Shown: positions 2,264-56,797 of the stretch, one piece after another
Layout: every line of letters begins with the position of its first letter
Numbering within the stretch: the first letter of the stretch is position 1
Sequence record: MK250019.1
Reading direction: 5' to 3' (one strand)
Length of the DNA: 64,000 nt
The notes under the pieces: generated by a model
What the model saw: only the letters and a program-made list of their open reading frames with translations
Databases searched by the model: none
What the model was told of the DNA's origin: nothing
Program-made: the position numbers and the translations under genes

Positions 2264-3694
2264 ATGGGATATAAAAGATATGGTAGTAGTGAGTCTGTAC
2301 CAACGTTTAATGATGATAATAATGGGGAAGTTGTTTCAAATGGTATTTTAAAAAATTCATCAAAGAAAGAAATATATTTTGGTATTAAGAAACCAAAATC
2401 TGCTGCAGATTCAGATAAACCTTGGCGAGAATTAACAACAGATGATTTTGATACATAGATAACAAGTGAAACTGGTGGATGTTCAGCAACAATAACAAAA
2501 AATGATAATGATACCACAAATAAAGCAGGTATAATTAGATATATATTATCTAAAAATACAACAGGTAGTAGTAGGTTAATAACATTTAAATATAAAGGTA
2601 CAACATTATTTGAAATAAATTAGGCTGCAGGTCCAGTAGATAATAATACATATGTATATTTAAGATATTGGGTATTTGATAAGTCAACATATGAAAATAT
2701 TATAACATCTGCAAATAATACTACTTAGTTATATCGTTTTTCTCTTGGCATTAACAAAGAAGATGATAATGCGTATATAAGTTATGAAACTTGGAAAACA
2801 TCTGGTAATATAATATATCATGTAACAAATAATGAAGATTTAACTAATATCTTTAATACAGCAACTTCGATAAAAAATTTAGTAGATAATGGAACATTAA
2901 CATATGTTGCAGGAAAAAATTTTGATAATAATACTATATCAAGTATTATAAAATTCCCAACAAAAATGTATGAAAATGAAAATACACTTATTTCTGTTAA
3001 TGATAATAGTATTGTATACATATATAGTGGCAAATATGAAGCAACTGCTGATGCAAATGATTATTATTTTGATAAAAATAATATACATAGCATTATAAAT
3101 TGGGGAAATATTAATAATGATAATGTTACATCTATTGGAAAATATAGATATAATAAAAAATTAGTAATAAAAAAAACATATGAAATTTATATGTTTAAAG
3201 TATTAACTAGTTGGTTTACTTCACATGGTAATGAAGCATTTTTATTTGTACCGACTAGTGATAGTAGGTATACATCAATCTCTAAAGAAAATGCAGATAT
3301 AGATAGATGGGGTTATACATCATTTCCAGTAAGAGAAGACAGAAATAAACTATATACATATTTCTTTGTAGAAACAACAAATACTTTAACAATCAATATG
3401 CTTTCTGGTAAAACATTAAAAGAATTAAAAGATAATTATAATTTAACAAAAGTTTCTGGAAATATGTATGAAGAAGATGATACTTATGTAAATAATATAT
3501 CAGATAAAGTATTAGTAAATCAATGGAATACTATTATACATAAAACATTAAATAAAAATACAGCAACAGATACTGTTGCTGTAGCATGGTTATATGCTTC
3601 AAATGGTTCAGAAATTTATACAAACGCAACATCAAGTAATAGTGTAATAATTGATATGAATAATCCTTCAGGAATATATAATATTACAGTATAA
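2264..3694 (+). CDS. Putative virion surface protein with BACON-like Ig domain (476 aa, code 15)
   Basis: ORFs 2264..2458 and 2966..3694 are the same frame, joined across TAGs. It has GCSATI...AGIIRYILSKNTTGSSRLITFKY, a BACON-like N-x(4)-R signature. Confidence 0.55.
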
Positions 3695-3700
3695 TATTAA

Positions 3701-3788
3701 ATTCGTTATTCAAAAAACATTGAATAACGATTTTTTTATTTATGTAATTTAAGTTGCAGGATCTTATATTTAGACGTATATATAAAAA
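3701..3788 (+). repeat. Intergenic terminator plus leader module, copy 1
   Basis: Hairpin TCGTTATTCAA/TTGAATAACGA followed by TTTTTATTTATGTAATTTAAGTT; imperfect direct repeat of 4654..4742. Confidence 0.75.
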
Positions 3789-3799
3789 ATGAATTTTCC

Positions 3800-4648
3800 A
3801 TGGCAAATTATAAACAAGTTTCTAACATTGGTATAGAAACAATTTCAGCAGATACACATACAAATGAAACATTAAAAGCACATTATCAAAGTAATGATTT
3901 ATAGACTATATATTTTGGATTAAAAGATGATAATGGTAATTATGAAGGTAAGTTAATAGAATCTTCTTATGAATTAACATCTACAATACCTGGATGTTCT
4001 GCAACTATTTCTACTATTGATTTAACAAAAACTGCAGGAATTATTAAATATACGATTTCTAAAAATACAACAAGTAGTGCAAGATTAATAACCTTTAAAT
4101 ATAAGAATACTGAATTATTTAAAATAAATTAGGTTGATACTAATACATTAATATATAATTCTGAATATGTATATGTATGTACGGTTGGTAATATATCAAG
4201 TGCACCTAATAAAATATGGTTATTTGCTATACTTGCTGAAAATGGTAGTTTACCTAATAAGTCAGATTTATTAAATAATTATAAAACAATGGTGCAATTT
4301 GATAGTTCATATGCAGGAGATAATCGAAAAAATGGTAGAACATTGTATTTTTCAGAGAAAACGTTACCTGCAAATAAAACAATACAGGAATTAAAAAATA
4401 GTGCGGTATTAACAGTTGTTAGAGAAAATAAAGTTAAGTATGATACAGATATTCCTTATCATTTAGTACTAGTAAATAATAATGCATATAATGCACCATA
4501 TAATATTTAGTCTAACATTGAAGACGCATTTAAAACTCCATATGAGATGTATGTTATAAATTAGAGTGATACTGTTATTTCATATTAGAAGACAATATTT
4601 AATATATTTGATTATTATTATTGTGGTATATATAAATTTAATTCATAA
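3800..4648 (+). CDS. Paralog of 2264..3694, BACON-like domain protein (code 15)
   Basis: ATG 3800 is open to TAA 4646-4648 with TAG=Gln. GCSATIS...AGIIKYTISKNTTSSARLITFKYKNTELFKINQ aligns with the previous gene. Confidence 0.6.
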
Positions 4649-21085: not shown

Positions 21086-21908
21086 ACGTCTATTTAAATT
21101 TGGTGGTGATTCTGATTTTGGAACAGTTACCAATGTAATTATTAGTATTATTGGTGCAGTTATTATTATTATGGGATGGCATTGTATTTCAGCATATAAC
21201 GTAGTACCTAGTAATATTCTTCCTGATCCTTTTAAAGTGATTGGTAGTATTCCAACATTAATTTCAGAAAATCATTTATTTGCAAATATTTGGTATACAG
21301 TAAAATTGAATTTATCATGTTATGTGTATGCTATTTTATTTTCATTTCCTATAGGATTCTTAATTGCATTGTATCCTATTAATAATATCTTATTTGGAAA
21401 ATATATTAATTCAGTCCGATTTATTCCATTACCTTCTATTACAGGAATTTTCCTTGCAATATTTGGTTTGACATTTGGAATGAAGGTATGGTTTTTGACA
21501 GTTGCAATTATGATTTATATTATTCCATCTGTTGTAAATAAAGTAAATGATTTGCAAAACCCTGCTAATGAAAAAGATAATGTATATTTGCAAACTGCAC
21601 AGACAATCGGAATGACTTCATGGCAAAAATTTCGTTATGTATATTTCCCTTATGTAACAGGTGGCGTAGTTGATTCTTGTATTGACTTATTGGCTATTAG
21701 TTATAGTTATGTTGTTATTGCAGAAATGATTTATAAAGATGGTGCAGTAAGTGGAATGGGTGCATTGATTAATACGATGGTTAGACAATCACAAATGGCA
21801 TCTGCATTTGCATTACTTTTCCTTATTATTATTATCGGTTGTGTACAAGATTTTCTTTTTAAGAAAGGTGCAAAACTATTATTTCCTTACAAATATAAAA
21901 ATGAATAA
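21072..21908 (+). CDS. ABC transporter permease (SsuC/TauC-like)
   Basis: Multiple TM helices; EAA-loop-like TAQTIGMTSWQKFRYVYFP. Confidence 0.85.
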   Translation: MNLIKRLFKFGGDSDFGTVTNVIISIIGAVIIIMGWHCISAYNVVPSNILPDPFKVIGSIPTLISENHLFANIWYTVKLNLSCYVYAILFSFPIGFLIALYPINNILFGKYINSVRFIPLPSITGIFLAIFGLTFGMKVWFLTVAIMIYIIPSVVNKVNDLQNPANEKDNVYLQTAQTIGMTSWQKFRYVYFPYVTGGVVDSCIDLLAISYSYVVIAEMIYKDGAVSGMGALINTMVRQSQMASAFALLFLIIIIGCVQDFLFKKGAKLLFPYKYKNE

Positions 21909-24431: not shown

Positions 24432-24517
24432 GCCAAGATGGTGGAATAGGTAGACACGCTAGACTTAAAATCTCGTGGACTGAAAAGTCCGTACGGGTTC
24501 GAGTCCCGTTCTTGGTA
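24432..24517 (+). tRNA. trnL: tRNA-Leu(TAA), CCA not encoded
   Basis: Acceptor GCCAAGA/TCTTGGT, D-arm GTGGAATAGGTAGACAC, anticodon loop CT-TAA-AA (24466-24468), long variable arm GGAC/GTCC, T-arm ACGGG-TTCGAGT-CCCGT. Followed by CAA, then a 13-bp terminator hairpin. Confidence 0.93.
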
Positions 24518-24573
24518 CAAAAATTATTATAGAGAATAAACAACATATGTTTATTCTCTATTTTTTATATAAT

Positions 24574-50499: not shown

Positions 50500-50790
50500 T
50501 TAACGTCCACTAATCATTTTATCAATCTTTCTGAAAATTGCATTTACTTCATCATATGAAATATCACCATCATTCAATAGTCCAACTATTTTAAGAATAT
50601 CTTCTAACATCCATTGAATATTATTAATAACTTCAGCTTTCAAACTTTCGTCACCAGTTTTATCAAGACACACATTGATATTATATGCATAATCTTCATA
50701 ACTTTGATTTTCATTCAAACGTCTTTTAATAGTTTTTGATACACTTCTCATGATATTCTCATAAAGTGCTTTCTTTTGCATTTTATTCAT
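50500..50790 (-). CDS. Small putative internal head protein
   Basis: MNKMQKKALYENIMRSVSKTIKRRLNE leader. Confidence 0.6.
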   Translation of the reverse strand: MNKMQKKALYENIMRSVSKTIKRRLNENQSYEDYAYNINVCLDKTGDESLKAEVINNIQWMLEDILKIVGLLNDGDISYDEVNAIFRKIDKMISGR

Positions 50791-50871
50791 AATTTTTAAT
50801 AGTTTTTTTTCTTATATGTTATTTATCAAATAAAACAAACAATATATTTTTTGATATAATTAAATAATAAT

Positions 50872-51246
50872 ATGATGCAATTAAAACTTTTAGGAGTACT
50901 TCAGGATTATGATAGTCCTTATGTCTCCTTATATAGAGACGATAATAGTCAAAATTTATATTTGGCTGTGGAACAAAACTCAGATAAACCAAAAGAGTTT
51001 TGCACATTGTTACTTCATGTGTCTAAAAGATTAGTCGAATATTATTTGCAGAATAAAATTGGCCTCCGAGAAATCTATAAGAATGTGAAAAGTAAATATA
51101 TTTGGTTTCACAAAAAAGATCAGATTTGTACATTGGTAGATGTAGGTAATGAAGATGTGTCTAAATACATAGATATTGATGATGATATGTTTGATCCTGA
51201 TTTTTGCAATCATGAAGCTAGCATAAAGTATTATTTAAACAAGTAA
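50872..51246 (+). CDS. Hypothetical protein
   Basis: 124-aa TAG-free ORF with host-like codon usage. Confidence 0.6.
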   Translation: MMQLKLLGVLQDYDSPYVSLYRDDNSQNLYLAVEQNSDKPKEFCTLLLHVSKRLVEYYLQNKIGLREIYKNVKSKYIWFHKKDQICTLVDVGNEDVSKYIDIDDDMFDPDFCNHEASIKYYLNK

Positions 51247-51475
51247 AATTACTAAATGTACTAGAGAGTGACTTGAAATATGATCGAACACTTGATTTCA
51301 AGAAAGCCTTAAAAATAAAGAGATAGAACTTGACGTTGGTGCAACTTTGTTACAACATAAGGAGAATGACATTTTAGTAAGGTTTTCAAAGATTTCTCGT
51401 GCTTACAGCGTATAGCTGCTTAGCACATTATTGAATTATTAACGAACTATTGATATAATATATAACTATATTTTT

Positions 51476-52375
51476 ATGAATGCAAAACCAATTATCAAAT
51501 GGGTAGGTGGAAAAACCCAATTATTAAATACAATAAATGATAATCTTCCACAAAATATATCACATTTTAACACATATATGGAACCATTCATTGGTGGTGC
51601 TGCAGTATTATTTTATATTGTTCCCAAGTTACCTAATATAAAAAATGTGTTTATAAATGACTTAAATTATAAATTGACAAATTTATATACAGTTGTAAAA
51701 AATAAACATTTGAAATTAATTAATCAATTAAAAACAATACAGGAAGAATATAGAAAATCTGAAGATCCGAAAATGTTTTATTATAATACCCGTGATTCAT
51801 TCAATATATATGATATGAATATGGAACCAGATGCAGATGTATTACATGCAGCTGAATTTATATTCTTAAATAAGACATGTTTTAACGGATTATACAGAGA
51901 GAATTCAAAAGGTGAATTTAATGTACCATGGAATAAGAATGTAAATGTTTGTATATGTGATGAAGAAAATATTAAAGCAGTACATAATTTTTTCATTAAA
52001 TACAATGTTCAAATATCTACTGGTACATATAATGATTTTTTTAAAGGTAAAGGAATGTATATGAAAAATGCGTTTGTTTATATGGATCCACCTTATAGAC
52101 CTATTACTAAATCATCTGCATTTACGTCATATACAAAATCAGGATTTAATGATGATAGTCAAAAAGATTTAAAAGTATGGTTTGATGTATTGACTAGTGA
52201 TTGCGCTTATTGTATGTTAAGTAATTCTGATCCAAAAAATTCTGACATGAATGATATGTTTTTTGATAACTTATATTCAGATTATAACATAATTAGAGTA
52301 AATGCTAAAAGATCCATCAATTCAAAAGGAAATGGACGTGGTAGTATAACAGAAATATTGGTAAAAAATTATTAA
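51476..52375 (+). CDS. dam: DNA adenine methyltransferase (Dam/D12 class)
   Basis: IIKWVGGKT, YMEPFIGGAAV, FLNKTCFNGLYRENSKGEFNVP, YMDPPY. Confidence 0.92.
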   Translation: MNAKPIIKWVGGKTQLLNTINDNLPQNISHFNTYMEPFIGGAAVLFYIVPKLPNIKNVFINDLNYKLTNLYTVVKNKHLKLINQLKTIQEEYRKSEDPKMFYYNTRDSFNIYDMNMEPDADVLHAAEFIFLNKTCFNGLYRENSKGEFNVPWNKNVNVCICDEENIKAVHNFFIKYNVQISTGTYNDFFKGKGMYMKNAFVYMDPPYRPITKSSAFTSYTKSGFNDDSQKDLKVWFDVLTSDCAYCMLSNSDPKNSDMNDMFFDNLYSDYNIIRVNAKRSINSKGNGRGSITEILVKNY

Positions 52376-52406
52376 TAAAATAAATACTTAAACATATATC
52401 TGATAT

Positions 52407-53399
52407 ATGAAATTTATACATAATCTGACTGAATAGAATAATATATTGTCATATAATGAAATATTAAATACAATTAATAACATTAATGAAGAATATCATG
52501 AAGTAACAAATTTTGATAATATGATAAAAGATGTTGCTAAACAAATATATTATTCTAATTATACTGATTTTTATACAGGTTGGAATTGGTTTATTAAAGA
52601 ACAAACATGTTTAAAAGTTAATACTGAATATAAATCAGATAATACAGTTTATAAAGATAATATAGGATGTCCTATATATATTAAATTTGATGATTTAGAA
52701 AATAATACATATTTTGCTGTATAGATGAGAGATAATACGTATAACATACCAATATATGTTAACAAACATTATAACTTATCTATATAGCAATATGCATATA
52801 AATTAAAACATGAAATTACACATATACGTACAATGTATTCTAAAATAGATTCAAATCCGTTAGATTCATTAAAGAATAGATCATCAAGTATTGAATTGGA
52901 TAATATAAGATTAATAAATAATAAACAATTTCCATTTATATATAATGTTTGTTATTTATTATCACCAACTGAATAGCAAGCACGTATAAATGAATATATA
53001 TTTTTTATAAAAGATTATTTAAAAGAAAATGATATAGATAATGTAAACAGTCATAAATTAATAAATGAATTAATTGAAAAAGGATATGAACATACATTAT
53101 TAAAAGATTTCTTTGATATATATGAAAAATTAGAATTTATGGTAAATGCTTAGATTTATATATAGGTAATATCATTAGGATATGTGTTATAGAAATATAA
53201 TTTATTTAAATCTAATATAACAGATGCAGATTTACTGAGATTAGAATCTGATAGAACAGGAATGATATATAAGTATATTAAATCAGATGAAGATAATTCA
53301 TATAAAATATTAGAATTTTTAAAATAGAATTTATCTGATTACTATACAAAATTAAAAAACGTAACATACAAAACATTAAAAGAAAATAACATAATTTAA
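52407..53399 (+). CDS. Putative zincin-like metallopeptidase (HExxH), 330 aa, code 15
   Basis: KHEITHI plus downstream LSPTEQQARINE; ATG 52407 to TAA 53397-53399 with TAG=Gln. Confidence 0.55.
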
Positions 53400-53405
53400 T
53401 TATAT

Positions 53406-53879
53406 ATGAAGACTAATTTAAATGGTGGTTGTTTATTACCAAATGAAGAAATTATTGTAAAGGATGGACTTGTATTGATGTCTGAAATTAAAGTAGGTGA
53501 TAAAGTTTTATCACATGATGGTGATTACCATGAAGTAGAACATGTATGGAATTTTGAGAAACCTACATACTATGTATCACTTTCAAACGGTGATCATATC
53601 GAATGTTCAAATACACATAGATTCTTGGTAAATAAGAATAAGCTTGAGAAAGAATCATCATGGAAAACTGCTGAAGAACTTCATGATGGAGATGAAATCT
53701 TTACAATGAGTACCATTAATATGGACATTAATGAGAAAATTAAGTTTAATAAAATAAAGATTGCCCGTATATTCAAATCAGGAATTAATAATCATGTGAT
53801 TGACATTACTGTTAAAGATACACATACATATATTTCTGCTAATGGTATTGTTAATCATAATTCAGGAACTAATTTCTGA
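53406..53879 (+). CDS. Stand-alone mini-intein (Hint domain) with 8-aa N-extein and 5-aa C-extein
   Basis: MKTNLNGG|CLLPNEEI (block A), IECSNTHRFLV (block B), VIDITV (block F), IVNHN|SGTNF-stop (block G, +1 Ser). Confidence 0.88.
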   Translation: MKTNLNGGCLLPNEEIIVKDGLVLMSEIKVGDKVLSHDGDYHEVEHVWNFEKPTYYVSLSNGDHIECSNTHRFLVNKNKLEKESSWKTAEELHDGDEIFTMSTINMDINEKIKFNKIKIARIFKSGINNHVIDITVKDTHTYISANGIVNHNSGTNF

Positions 53880-53894
53880 TAATGAATTATAATA

Positions 53895-54293
53895 ATGAAT
53901 TATAAAGAAACATATTTAAAACCAGAAATTGCATTCTTACTGAAAAAGCATAACTATAATATCGATAAAACTCGATATATGGTAAACAGAGACGGAACAT
54001 TAGTTGAATCTACTAATGAATTATAGAAACATTATAATCATTTAGAATTAGCTTATAATCCTAATGCAGAAGAAGTAATCGATTATTTCAAAAAACAATC
54101 AATTTATATTAACATTAATAAAATAGATGATAATAAATGGGAATGGATTATTTCATTTGGTAAGAAAACTGTATATTCTGGTGAAACTGCAAACGGAAAT
54201 ATCGGGCATAATCTTCCAGAATCACGTCAATTTTTTAACAATGAAAAAGACGCGTATTATGATGCAGTTATAGAACTTATTATTTTAATTTAA
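53895..54293 (+). CDS. Hypothetical protein (132 aa, one TAG), paralog of 55851
   Basis: YLKPEIAFLLKKHNY...YNPNAEEVIDYF...DAYYDAVIELII. Confidence 0.6.
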
Positions 54294-54389
54294 TATATAA
54301 GAGGATATGGATTTAATTCTATATTCTCTTTTTTCTTTCAAATAAAATATGTATCTTTGTATAAAATATGAATTAATAATTATAAGAGA

Positions 54390-55643
54390 ATGGATACAAA
54401 AACATATATGGCAATTAAAGATTGCCTTAGAATAATTATTCAAGGATCTGAATTTGAAAATAATTTATTTGCTGTTGGCGGATGTTGTAGAGATGAGATT
54501 TTAGGAAATAATATAAAAGATTTAGACCTTGTTGTTTCATTAGAAAATGGCGGTATTAAATTTGCAGAATGGTTGGAAAAGAATCATTATACAAAAGGAA
54601 CTGTTGTGACATATCCTCGATATGGAACTGCTATGTTCAGACTAAAGGATTTTCCTAATGAAGAACTTGAAGTTGTACAAACAAGAACTGAAATTTATAC
54701 AACAGATTCAAGAAAACCAGATACAACATTCGGTTCACTTAAGCAGGATTGCATGCGTAGAGACCTTACAATCAATGCAATTTATTATGATATTTCAAAC
54801 AGTAAATTTATTGATGTTACAAACAGATCATTTGATGACATTAAAAATAAAATTATTGTAACACCATGTGAACCAGATCAGACATATATTGATGATCCTC
54901 TTCGCATTATGAGATGTGTAAGATTTGCATGTAAACTTGGTTGGAATATAGATAAAAATGTATTCAACAGTATGAAGAAAAATATAGATAGACTATCTAT
55001 TATTTCAAAAGAAAGAATACAGGATGAACTTATGAAAATATTGAATACACCAAATTCAAAATTAGGTATTGATTATCTATTTGATATTGATGCAATGAAA
55101 TTTATTTTCCCTTGTATAAATCATAATATTCCTGGACATTTTATTGATTTAGATAAGACATATAAACCTTATTTAAAATTAGCATTAATTAATATTAATA
55201 ATTCTAATGTTAAAGAAGATTTAATTAATCTTAAATTTTCTACATATGAAATTAATACAATAATGAATTATATTAATTTATATCATGATATGTCGAAAAT
55301 TAATAATCAATCATCACCCAGTGATATTAGACGAATGTTATATAAATGCAAAACATTAAATATATTCTTTGATGTATATAACATGATAGTAATATATGAA
55401 TCAAATAACAATAAATTAAAATCAATTCATGATGCTATTTCGAAAGGAATAAATTGTAATGATTTAATTAAGATGTTTGAATATAAGTTACCGGTTAATG
55501 GTAATGATATTATGGATGCATTTAATATTAAACCAGGACCAAAAATTAAAGAATATCTTGATAAAAGTTTTGATATTGTCTTTGATAATCCTTATATAAC
55601 AAAAGATGAAATTTTAAATAAGTTAAAAGAGATTAAAAATTAA
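54390..55643 (+). CDS. cca: CCA-adding tRNA nucleotidyltransferase (class II)
   Basis: AVGGCCRDEILG...KDLDLVV, DCMRRDLTINA, DDPLRIMRCVRFA; promoter TATCTTTG at 54352. Confidence 0.88.
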   Translation: MDTKTYMAIKDCLRIIIQGSEFENNLFAVGGCCRDEILGNNIKDLDLVVSLENGGIKFAEWLEKNHYTKGTVVTYPRYGTAMFRLKDFPNEELEVVQTRTEIYTTDSRKPDTTFGSLKQDCMRRDLTINAIYYDISNSKFIDVTNRSFDDIKNKIIVTPCEPDQTYIDDPLRIMRCVRFACKLGWNIDKNVFNSMKKNIDRLSIISKERIQDELMKILNTPNSKLGIDYLFDIDAMKFIFPCINHNIPGHFIDLDKTYKPYLKLALININNSNVKEDLINLKFSTYEINTIMNYINLYHDMSKINNQSSPSDIRRMLYKCKTLNIFFDVYNMIVIYESNNNKLKSIHDAISKGINCNDLIKMFEYKLPVNGNDIMDAFNIKPGPKIKEYLDKSFDIVFDNPYITKDEILNKLKEIKN

Positions 55644-55694
55644 AACAATTTATTGGTTAAACATTATAAACATTAATTAAAACAGTTATTAGAT

Positions 55695-55844
55695 ATGGAT
55701 TTAAATATTACACAGAGAGAAGGAATTAAGAAGTGTCTCTATGAGGATTTAAAGAAAATGTATGATGCATTTATTTTGACTGATAGAGATAAAGTAGAAA
55801 GTGTATTTAATGAGTTTTTGAATAAATGTGAACGTTATATTTAA
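55695..55844 (+). CDS. Small hypothetical protein (49 aa)
   Basis: ATG 55695 to TAA 55842-55844, filling the gap between genes. Confidence 0.45.
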   Translation: MDLNITQREGIKKCLYEDLKKMYDAFILTDRDKVESVFNEFLNKCERYI

Positions 55845-55850
55845 TTTGAT

Positions 55851-56249
55851 ATGAATTATTTTACTCATACAGTAGATGATAATATTTGTAAGTGGTTACT
55901 CGATAATAAGTTTCCACTTACAAAGTGTATACGAAATGATCATAATGAATCATTATATTATACATTGCCATATGAAGATTCTGATGGATGGCAATATTGT
56001 GATGCATATTATAAACCTACATATTTTGATGTAAAAGAATGGTTATATAAAGAACATAATATACTTATTAATTCGAATATTTATACTGATAGATTTTCTG
56101 TACAAATTAGATATAAATCAAAATCAGATAAGTATTTTGGAAATTGTTGGGAAATTGGTTATGGTTGTAAAACATTTGAAGATTGTTTAAAATCTGCAAT
56201 TGAATATATTATTGAAAATAATATACTGAACGAAAAGAGTACAGAATAA
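55851..56249 (+). CDS. Hypothetical protein
   Basis: YKPTYFDVKEWLYKEHNILI family motif. Confidence 0.6.
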   Translation: MNYFTHTVDDNICKWLLDNKFPLTKCIRNDHNESLYYTLPYEDSDGWQYCDAYYKPTYFDVKEWLYKEHNILINSNIYTDRFSVQIRYKSKSDKYFGNCWEIGYGCKTFEDCLKSAIEYIIENNILNEKSTE

Positions 56250-56254
56250 TTTAA

Positions 56255-56797
56255 TTATGTTAATGGATGAAATATTTCTTTTTGTTCTTTAATATATTTT
56301 TTTGCTTCAGGTAGATTATCAAATAAAATATCATTTTCATCTGGTTGACAGTAAACCATATTTCCATCATCTTCTATAATATAGATAATACCGAATGTAT
56401 CTTGCATTGATGTTGGTTCAATTGGTTTACTGAATATGATTTTTCTTATTTGATTATCTACAATTACATAGTAAATATTTGCATTTGCATCTATATTACT
56501 AGTCCATTTACCGATATAATTTATTTTATCATCATATGATGATAATTCATTATTCATGACATTATCACCGAAAAATGAAGCTAAGTAATTATTATTTGCA
56601 TTTACTTTATCTATGTTATCTCTAATAAGTCCATCAGATGTTAAATTAATTTGAGATTTATTATCATCTGGATAAAAATATCCACCTATTATAATATCAT
56701 CAAATTCATCATTATCTTCTTTTGGATTTAACAACATATCAGATAAGTTATTTAACTGCGGAATATATTTATGTAATAATTTATAGGTATATTTCAT
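56255..56797 (-). CDS. Hypothetical protein
   Basis: 180-aa TAG-free ORF, isolated on the minus strand. Confidence 0.55.
   Translation of the reverse strand: MKYTYKLLHKYIPQLNNLSDMLLNPKEDNDEFDDIIIGGYFYPDDNKSQINLTSDGLIRDNIDKVNANNNYLASFFGDNVMNNELSSYDDKINYIGKWTSNIDANANIYYVIVDNQIRKIIFSKPIEPTSMQDTFGIIYIIEDDGNMVYCQPDENDILFDNLPEAKKYIKEQKEIFHPLT

Follow-up and report, generated by a model that had tools for sequence, protein, structure and literature searches.

Inteins are thought to persist only because destroying the intein also destroys the essential host protein, which raises the question of what maintains an intein gene that has no host protein. Such a gene is located in the 64,000-nucleotide stretch of sequence record MK250019.1 analysed here, hereafter the window, which has a G+C content of 26% and contains many frames that are open only with TAG as a sense codon (e.g. 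1386 aa with 31 TAG and 1187 aa with 19 TAG). A first-pass annotation of the sequence had described the gene as a stand-alone mini-intein and had proposed that its product is either a short peptide ligated from the two flanks, a thioester-activated leader that ends in two glycines like ubiquitin, or the free Hint domain itself. The features of the locus are listed in Table 1.

Table 1. Features at the stand-alone intein locus (window coordinates; an arrow marks the junction between intein and extein).
Feature	Position	Strand	Remarks
Promoter-like TTGAAT-17-TATAAT, extended TG	51431..51459	+	5' of methylase gene; consensus match only, no functional evidence
D12-class N6-adenine DNA methyltransferase (Dam-type)	51476..52375	+	PF02086, E 3.9e-54, full length
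330-aa ORF, 8 in-frame TAG	52407..53399	+	Open only with TAG read as Gln
Stand-alone intein (HINT) gene	53406..53879	+	ATG start, 157 codons plus stop; ORF list, PF14890, fold model
Apparent relic N-extein leader MKTNLNGG, 8 codons	53406..53429	+	Resembles ...PTN(I/V)(Q/L)(S/A)GG↓ of RecA/UvsX-like exteins
144-aa HINT domain, Cys9-Asn152	53430..53861	+	Blocks A, B, F and G intact; alignments
Apparent relic C-extein tail SGTNF, 5 codons, then TGA TAA TGA	53862..53885	+	Compare ↓SG(I/V)xYN(S/A)S
132-aa ORF, 1 TAG	53895..54293	+	Frequent downstream neighbour; without family match
Terminator-like hairpin and T run	54299..54340	+	Directly 3' of 132-aa ORF; consensus match only
CCA-adding enzyme, complete	54390-55643		Downstream of Hint ORF

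The description of a stand-alone mini-intein with all catalytic residues and 13 flanking residues is borne out by the sequence, by the Pfam profile Intein_splicing (PF14890, E 5.6e-10, 39.7 bits against a curated cut-off of 35.8 bits) and by a HINT fold model, and the flanks and the closing stop codons were likewise confirmed from the sequence. All residues of the class-1 catalytic set (Cys/Ser1, (T/S)xxH, block F Asp, His-Asn and +1 Cys/Ser/Thr) are present: Cys9, which is residue 1 of the intein (codon 53430-53432), Ser68..His71 of block B (His codon 53616-53618), Asp133 (53802-53804) and His140 (53823-53825) of block F, the C-terminal His151-Asn152 (53856-53861) and the +1 Ser153 (53862-53864). 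The domain does not sit in frame inside a host protein with exteins to be joined into a functional product, since only 8 and 5 residues flank it, and it is not split into an IntN and an IntC on separate polypeptides, as one contiguous ORF covers both halves. It is the only HINT domain in the window.

The ORF is closed on both sides. An in-frame TAA is located three codons upstream (53397-53399) and the 3' end reads TGA TAA TGA (53877-53885), so that reassignment of a stop codon cannot fuse the ORF to a neighbour. Recoding or read-through of TAG or TGA as a link to the neighbours was rejected on account of these flanking TAA stops, as was read-through into the downstream ORF, which is in another frame in Lak-B. 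The absence of TAG codons from the gene, also remarked on in the first-pass annotation, is correct but carries little weight because the protein contains no Gln at all.

The closest solved structures by sequence are the gp41-1 and Pho (Pyrococcus) RadA inteins. An AlphaFold2 model built on 14 homologs adopted the HINT fold with a mean pLDDT of 82, and searches with Foldseek aligned the model to gp41-1 with a target TM of 0.82-0.84 and to many mini-inteins with a probability of 1.00, with further matches to NpuDnaB, the Mtu RecA mini-intein, BIL2, a C. thermocellum BIL domain and Hedgehog. The sole weak stretch in the model, residues 101-110, is a short linker of low pLDDT at the positions where relatives are either split or carry an endonuclease. 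No endonuclease domain (LAGLIDADG, HNH etc.) was found in the 144-aa domain, the full-length Pfam matches being to HINT families only, and the Pfam profiles Hint, Hint_2, PT-HINT and Hom_end_hint all scored under their cut-offs. The Hedgehog/Hog profile PF01079 gave 21.0 bits (cut-off 29.7 bits) and there are no extra regions of the Hog kind, while the pretoxin-HINT/BIL profile PF07591 gave 23.9 bits (cut-off 27.7 bits) and only 5 residues follow the domain. Nor does the leader, 8 aa here and 3-11 aa in homologs, hold the beta-grasp domain that precedes Gly-Gly in ubiquitin-like and ThiS carriers. A basic nucleic-acid-binding surface found no support, as the net charge is -3 to -9, similar to that of embedded inteins.

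Identical copies of the protein (100%) were detected with tblastn in Prevotella phage Lak-C1 and Lak-A2, and the other 13 Lak genomes (540-552 kb) encode full-length versions with 83-98% identity; the ORF is thus intact in 15 of 15 Lak genomes. The window itself belongs to a Lak megaphage of Prevotella in which TAG is read as sense. More distant stand-alone homologs, 149-160 aa in size and 55-84% identical to the protein in the window, form at least 14 metagenomic clusters, and in all of these the domain stands alone. The genes around it are of at least two types, one being a position beside the methylase and/or the CCA-adding enzyme. The methylase gene is located immediately 5' of the Hint ORF in six contigs (L002, L016, L027, L028, L029 and L035), and in some relatives it abuts or overlaps the ORF. 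Homologs of the 132-aa ORF (27-73% identity) follow on the 3' side in L002, L015, L020, L022, L023 and L027 but are absent from this position in L035, L016 and L018, with another gene in their place in L035. More distant methylase relatives in IMG/VR, at 47% identity or less, have no Hint ORF alongside, suggesting that the Hint gene is confined to a Lak-like clade. The second type of context is represented by L018, in which the Hint ORF is located three genes downstream of an intact, intein-free RecA-like gene. In this contig the stand-alone intein (3396-3845) is placed between a gene for an IF1/eIF-1A-like protein and, 2 nt downstream, a gene similar to those for IMPDH and GMP reductase; ribosomal protein S21 and the IF1/eIF-1A-like protein are encoded immediately upstream.

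That the Hint ORF might be the central fragment of a fractured gene was also considered. This was rejected because the methylase and the CCA-adding enzyme are both full length, while the 330-aa and 132-aa neighbours have no family matches (searches with Pfam and PHROG gave none for the 330-aa ORF) and are both missing or replaced in L035. In this 553.7-kb relative the 330-aa ORF has an internal deletion with the joint at 52422->53333, and the same is true of contigs from two RNA-library runs. As judged from the gene order, the Hint ORF is neither lodged in nor part of a broken gene, and the 330-aa ORF is dispensable. The latter represents a presence/absence polymorphism, of which L035 (4398-4520) retains the first 6 codons and about the last 20. 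An Rfam scan of positions 50500-56500 for introns and other RNAs yielded nothing credible.

The promoter-like site and the terminator-like hairpin, both of them consensus matches only, bracket the group of genes from the methylase to the 132-aa ORF. In a 3.2-kb scan, 2 terminator-like sites were observed against 0.3 expected. The Bacteroidetes-type promoter motif was no more frequent than expected by chance and did not occur near the Hint gene. The Hint ORF is covered by contigs from four metatranscriptomic libraries, one of which is a 958-nt contig that spans 53347-54303; such coverage demonstrates presence only and is not proof of transcription. Two intergenic segments, 51400-51452 and 54329-54362, were represented in the RNA-library contigs at a depth of about 200-600x as compared to about 5-25x elsewhere, and many contigs diverge at these positions, as if the segments were repeated intergenic elements, possibly regulatory, that are common to the genome or to other phages. 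Co-folding of the methylase with the Hint protein gave a score of 0.00, which counts neither for nor against binding, and the analysis turned up no partner or substrate for the protein.

To trace the origin of the gene, we queried 1.84 billion representative proteins with a profile built from the family. A stand-alone representative was recovered at 250 bits, followed by a series of embedded inteins at 85-155 bits. Inspection of the flanks revealed that nearly all of the top embedded relatives reside in phage RecA/UvsX-like recombinases, at one and the same site with the consensus ...(S/A)GG↓C......HN↓SG(I/V)xY(N/S)(S/A)S. Many of them are naturally split, their genes being of the fractured kind. 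In contig L001, the ORF for the N-terminal part of RecA plus IntN ends in a stop codon and the ORF for IntC plus the C-terminal part of RecA follows 143 nt further on, and in Lak-B4 (L031, MK250023, 525600-529800, minus strand) a 324-aa RecA-N plus IntN protein and a 245-aa IntC plus RecA-C protein are separated by a free-standing 463-aa ORF, which is probably a homing endonuclease. IntN and IntC are thus on separate polypeptides in both of these relatives. The identity of the Hint protein to the Lak-B4 intein is 55% over IntN and 56% over IntC.

The short flanks of the stand-alone gene carry a trace of the same site. The leader TNLNGG↓ aligns with PTN(I/V)(Q/L)(S/A)GG↓ and the tail ↓SGTN with ↓SG(I/V)..N, a homology that rests on about 6 matching residues only, and on this alignment the flanks appear to be the remains of a RecA/UvsX-like junction. 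The two glycines correspond to positions -2 and -1 of the ancestral insertion site, where they are conserved, so the "ubiquitin-like" di-glycine is inherited debris. In Lak-C1, from which the window comes unless it derives from a near twin, the RecA-like gene is located 122 kb from the Hint ORF and is intact and intein-free at the corresponding position (...VVSGG↓SGIIYN). The gene is present in the complete Lak genomes; it was not found in G001 and G002, the nearest IMG/VR records, which are only 61-76% complete. In a maximum-likelihood tree inferred from the IntN part, the 14 stand-alone clusters formed one clade (SH-aLRT 99) that is nested among the recombinase inteins and adjoins the split inteins of megaphages. 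By descent and sequence, the product of the Hint ORF can accordingly be classified as a contiguous, extein-less class-1 mini-intein that originates from a recombinase intein.

The probable route is an ectopic copy, made by mis-homing or illegitimate recombination, of an intein from the ...GG↓SG... site of a Lak-type recombinase, in which a few extein codons were carried along on each side to become the present leader and tail. The copy would thereafter have been inherited vertically as an independent gene in Lak and Lak-like megaphages, usually just downstream of the methylase.

Escape of this kind has occurred at least twice, as a second stand-alone family (P0026/P0031, 191-194 aa) is separate from the first. 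In its members, a complete intein followed by "SL" is joined through a short linker to a preceding degenerate IntC, the latter from the neighbouring site. No RecA-like genes adjoin them, and the tree groups them as sister to another of the embedded recombinase inteins (SH-aLRT 96). Some phage RecA-like genes (P0021, P0023 and P0038) contain two inteins that are only 11-14 residues apart. P0021 is a middle piece only, consisting of the IntC of the first intein, a 14-aa extein and the IntN of the second, an architecture which implies that the recombinase is assembled from three polypeptides in two trans-splicing reactions.

To quantify the selective constraints, we estimated omega for the Hint gene with the Nei-Gojobori method. 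The ratios were about 0.06-0.24, a sign of strong purifying selection, with saturated dS values in the deeper comparisons. Between the window and Lak-B5, the Hint ORF yielded an omega of 0.146 at a dS of 0.65, while four neighbouring genes had similar dS values (0.77-1.07) but higher dN values and omega ratios of 0.16-0.34. Since the dS of the Hint gene equals that of its neighbours, recent horizontal spread is not a likely cause of the low ratio. The amino acid identity was 83% for the Hint protein as compared to 64-81% for the neighbours in Lak-B5, 83% versus 56-60% in L020, and 77% versus 50-62% in L015. In every comparison the Hint protein was the most conserved of its locus, above the methylase and the CCA-adding enzyme. 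The Hint ORF of Lak-B4 (L022, 3001-3474) is a mosaic in which the first approximately 100 codons are of the Lak-C1/A type and the last third is identical to Lak-B5, indicative of recombination between Lak lineages within the gene.

The pattern of conservation differs between the domain and its flanks. Residues C9, C67, H71, D133 and H151 do not vary, whether the relatives are stand-alone or embedded. The leaders (3-11 aa) and tails (1-7 aa) of the 14 clusters have almost no sequence in common outside the two positions that adjoin the intein, with Gly at -1 and Ser at +1 except in one subclade, which has Asn and Cys instead. These two positions are constant within subclades while the remaining flank sequence drifts. 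The leader ends in GG in only the seven closest of the 14 clusters and in AG, YG, FG or N in the others, and the tails read SY, SL, SDVNSL, CN etc. The first-pass annotation had named two findings that would speak against its reading: nearest homologs embedded in long proteins with the same flanks, which would make the gene a deletion relic, and unconserved flanks. As regards the origin of the gene, both apply here, but the estimates of selection contradict a deletion relic.

Cys1, the block-B His and the block-F Asp are the residues required for the N-S acyl shift, whereas C-terminal cleavage requires the terminal Asn and the block-F His. In four clusters (P0010, P0011, P0012 and P0015), the terminal Asn and the block-F His have both been replaced, while Cys1, the block-B His and the block-F Asp are kept. 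These clusters also evolve under purifying selection (omega 0.19-0.49, at dS values near saturation), and full splicing is therefore not the universally selected activity. All stand-alone members retain the HINT fold and the thioester-forming centre; two members have Ala at the position of the block-B Ser. Eight residues (Y56, H64, N69, K77, K79, D94, R121 and A145) are invariant only in the stand-alone clade, which hints at a candidate interaction surface that may have been acquired after the escape.

These data bear on what the gene is for. Since purifying selection is stronger on the Hint gene than on the enzyme-coding genes next to it, the selected product appears to be the HINT protein, in agreement with the last of the proposals in the first-pass annotation. 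We consider it probable that an ectopic copy of an intein arose and was later domesticated without exteins, with the HINT protein as its product. The N-S acyl shift at Gly8-Cys9 would shed the leader and, in the Lak copies, cyclisation of Asn152 would then either remove the tail or splice it to the leader, so that a free 144-aa HINT domain would be released. Judging from the retained residues, the protein probably still self-processes, and the 13-residue "extein" would be a by-product. We infer that it is the free HINT domain which functions in the phage. It is conceivable, if somewhat doubtful, that the bare mini-intein has a new function on other molecules, such as Cys1-dependent attachment or cleavage, or interference with the split-intein recombinase of competing phages.

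The alternatives have to be weighed against the same observations. That the gene serves to make the spliced 13-mer MKTNLNGG-SGTNF as a signal or inhibitor agrees with the full catalytic set, including the +1 Ser, in the window and in the closest relatives. We regard this as the least credible of the readings, given that the flanks have nearly nothing in common beyond -1/+1, that four members are incapable of Asn cyclisation and that the flanking residues are accounted for as RecA-like extein debris. Hardly any more credence can be given to the proposal that the ...NLNGG thioester is transferred to other proteins or acts as a decoy for ubiquitin-like conjugation defences: the residues for the acyl shift are invariant even where the C-terminal chemistry has been lost, and the top Foldseek match is the BIL domain of a ubiquitin-like polyprotein, which is a similarity in fold only, but the leaders are too short for a beta-grasp fold and the two glycines, confined to the seven closest members, match the -2/-1 pair of the recombinase site in the embedded relatives. 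A neutral, decaying remnant, comparable to the intein pseudogene Arth_1007 of Arthrobacter, would account for the relic flanks, the missing host gene and the loss of the Asn and the block-F His in some relatives, and has a precedent in that an inactive intein with 66 aa of exteins has been described (PMC3196547). It is nonetheless very unlikely to apply here, as the omega ratios are low at dS values equal to those of the neighbours, the gene is the most conserved one locally and intact in every Lak genome as well as in 14 diverged clusters, and the block-B His, the most conserved residue of inteins, is retained, unlike in Arth_1007. A pseudogene maintained by horizontal spread would be expected to have dS values far below those of the neighbours, which was not seen.

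Selfish persistence or conflict between phages is a better candidate than a remnant, though still an unlikely one. The stand-alone gene would then be a reservoir copy that re-invades the recombinase gene, or a blocker of trans-splicing of the split RecA-like intein in co-infecting relatives. Consistent with this, a split intein that belongs to one lineage with the stand-alone gene is present in Lak-B genomes, with the 463-aa ORF between its halves, whereas the site in Lak-C1 is empty, a second stand-alone family has arisen independently, and the Lak-B4 copy is a recombinant mosaic. However, the homology in the flanks is degraded and extends over 24 and 15 nt only, and where a genome has both a stand-alone and an embedded copy, these share only about 55% identity, which argues against ongoing gene conversion. 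Furthermore, the stand-alone gene occurs alongside fractured and intact recombinase genes alike, and a folded, contiguous intein is no obvious binder of split halves.

The nearest kin are the inteins of phage RecA/UvsX-like proteins, which share the lineage, the catalytic blocks and the GG↓C...HN↓SG junction with the Lak gene, 55-56% identity being observed for the split intein of Lak-B4. The Lak gene differs in that it has no recombinase exteins, is contiguous, lacks an endonuclease and, in Lak-C1, is remote from the intein-free recombinase gene. The arrangement in Lak-B4 corresponds to the naturally split inteins in fractured genes of the gp41-1 type (Dassa et al. 2009, PMC2677866). In Jug jumbo phages, "stand-alone" Intein_splicing ORFs are located between the fragments of broken genes such as nrdD (PMC12880540); both cases represent separately called Intein_splicing ORFs in huge gut phages, but the Lak ORF is not placed between gene pieces.

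BIL and Hedgehog/Hog HINT domains perform cleavage alone, by which a sizeable flanking protein or toxin is released, and Hog domains have a sterol-recognition region in addition. They have the HINT fold in common with the Lak protein, and the four Asn-less relatives keep only the N-terminal chemistry, as used by BIL and Hog domains. Unlike these, the Lak protein has nothing to release, and by phylogeny it is a true intein rather than a BIL domain.

Two precedents come closest. The Arth_1007 intein of Arthrobacter sp. FB24 is of phage origin and has leftover exteins of 66 aa in total (Tori and Perler 2011, PMC3196547). It lacks the block-B His and the class-3 Cys, does not splice and was judged to be a pseudogene (PMC3196547). 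Both genes have short leftover exteins, but the Lak gene retains all its catalytic residues under strong purifying selection. The HO and WHO genes of yeasts are intein-derived, extein-less and independent, and duplication and mis-homing followed by domestication have been proposed for their origin (Coughlan et al. 2020, PMC7282813). In their products the LAGLIDADG endonuclease was retained and a zinc finger added, motif G is missing and splicing does not occur (PMC7282813), whereas the Lak protein has motif G but consists of the 144-aa HINT domain alone, without a nuclease. The inteins listed in a review of exapted mobile elements of prokaryotes are regulatory ones within hosts only (PMC8987985). 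A literature search for free-standing, orphan or selected extein-less mini-inteins recovered no description of such a gene, although its coverage was limited and the result is not proof of novelty.

If inteins depend on an essential host protein, an extein-less copy should decay, as Arth_1007 did. The Lak mini-intein has instead stayed intact through saturation of synonymous sites, with its catalytic centre kept and at a slower rate of evolution than adjacent enzymes. Its persistence points to a use of the free HINT domain in phage biology, be it regulatory, chemical or in conflicts between phages, and it provides a clean natural example of the escape of an intein from its host gene. Should the reading of a new function prove true, it would be without known precedent as an exapted stand-alone intein among viruses and prokaryotes. 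As a compact natural cis-intein that is close kin to split inteins and has minimal native exteins, it could also interest protein engineers.

Additional observations were made on the coding of the locus and on other inteins. In L029 (851-1762), 6 TAG codons lie in frame in the methylase gene beside the Hint ORF, against none in the window, so that the use of TAG in this gene varies between related phages, and in L002 (4207-5148) it was called as two ORFs. No suppressor tRNA was identified within the 64 kb, the only tRNA found being tRNA-Leu(TAA) at 24432-24518. Two ORF pairs in the window, with members matched in length and spaced by about 10 kb, proved unrelated, and the spacing is a coincidence. 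Further inteins were observed in the Lak relative G001 (IMG/VR, 331 kb) at 51224-53144, 227317-228941 and 21520-21816, and also in L003-L008. Their hosts are a family-B DNA polymerase, a DExH-type helicase and one other gene; the N-terminal part of the helicase ends just past an IntN-like segment, suggesting that this intein may be split too.
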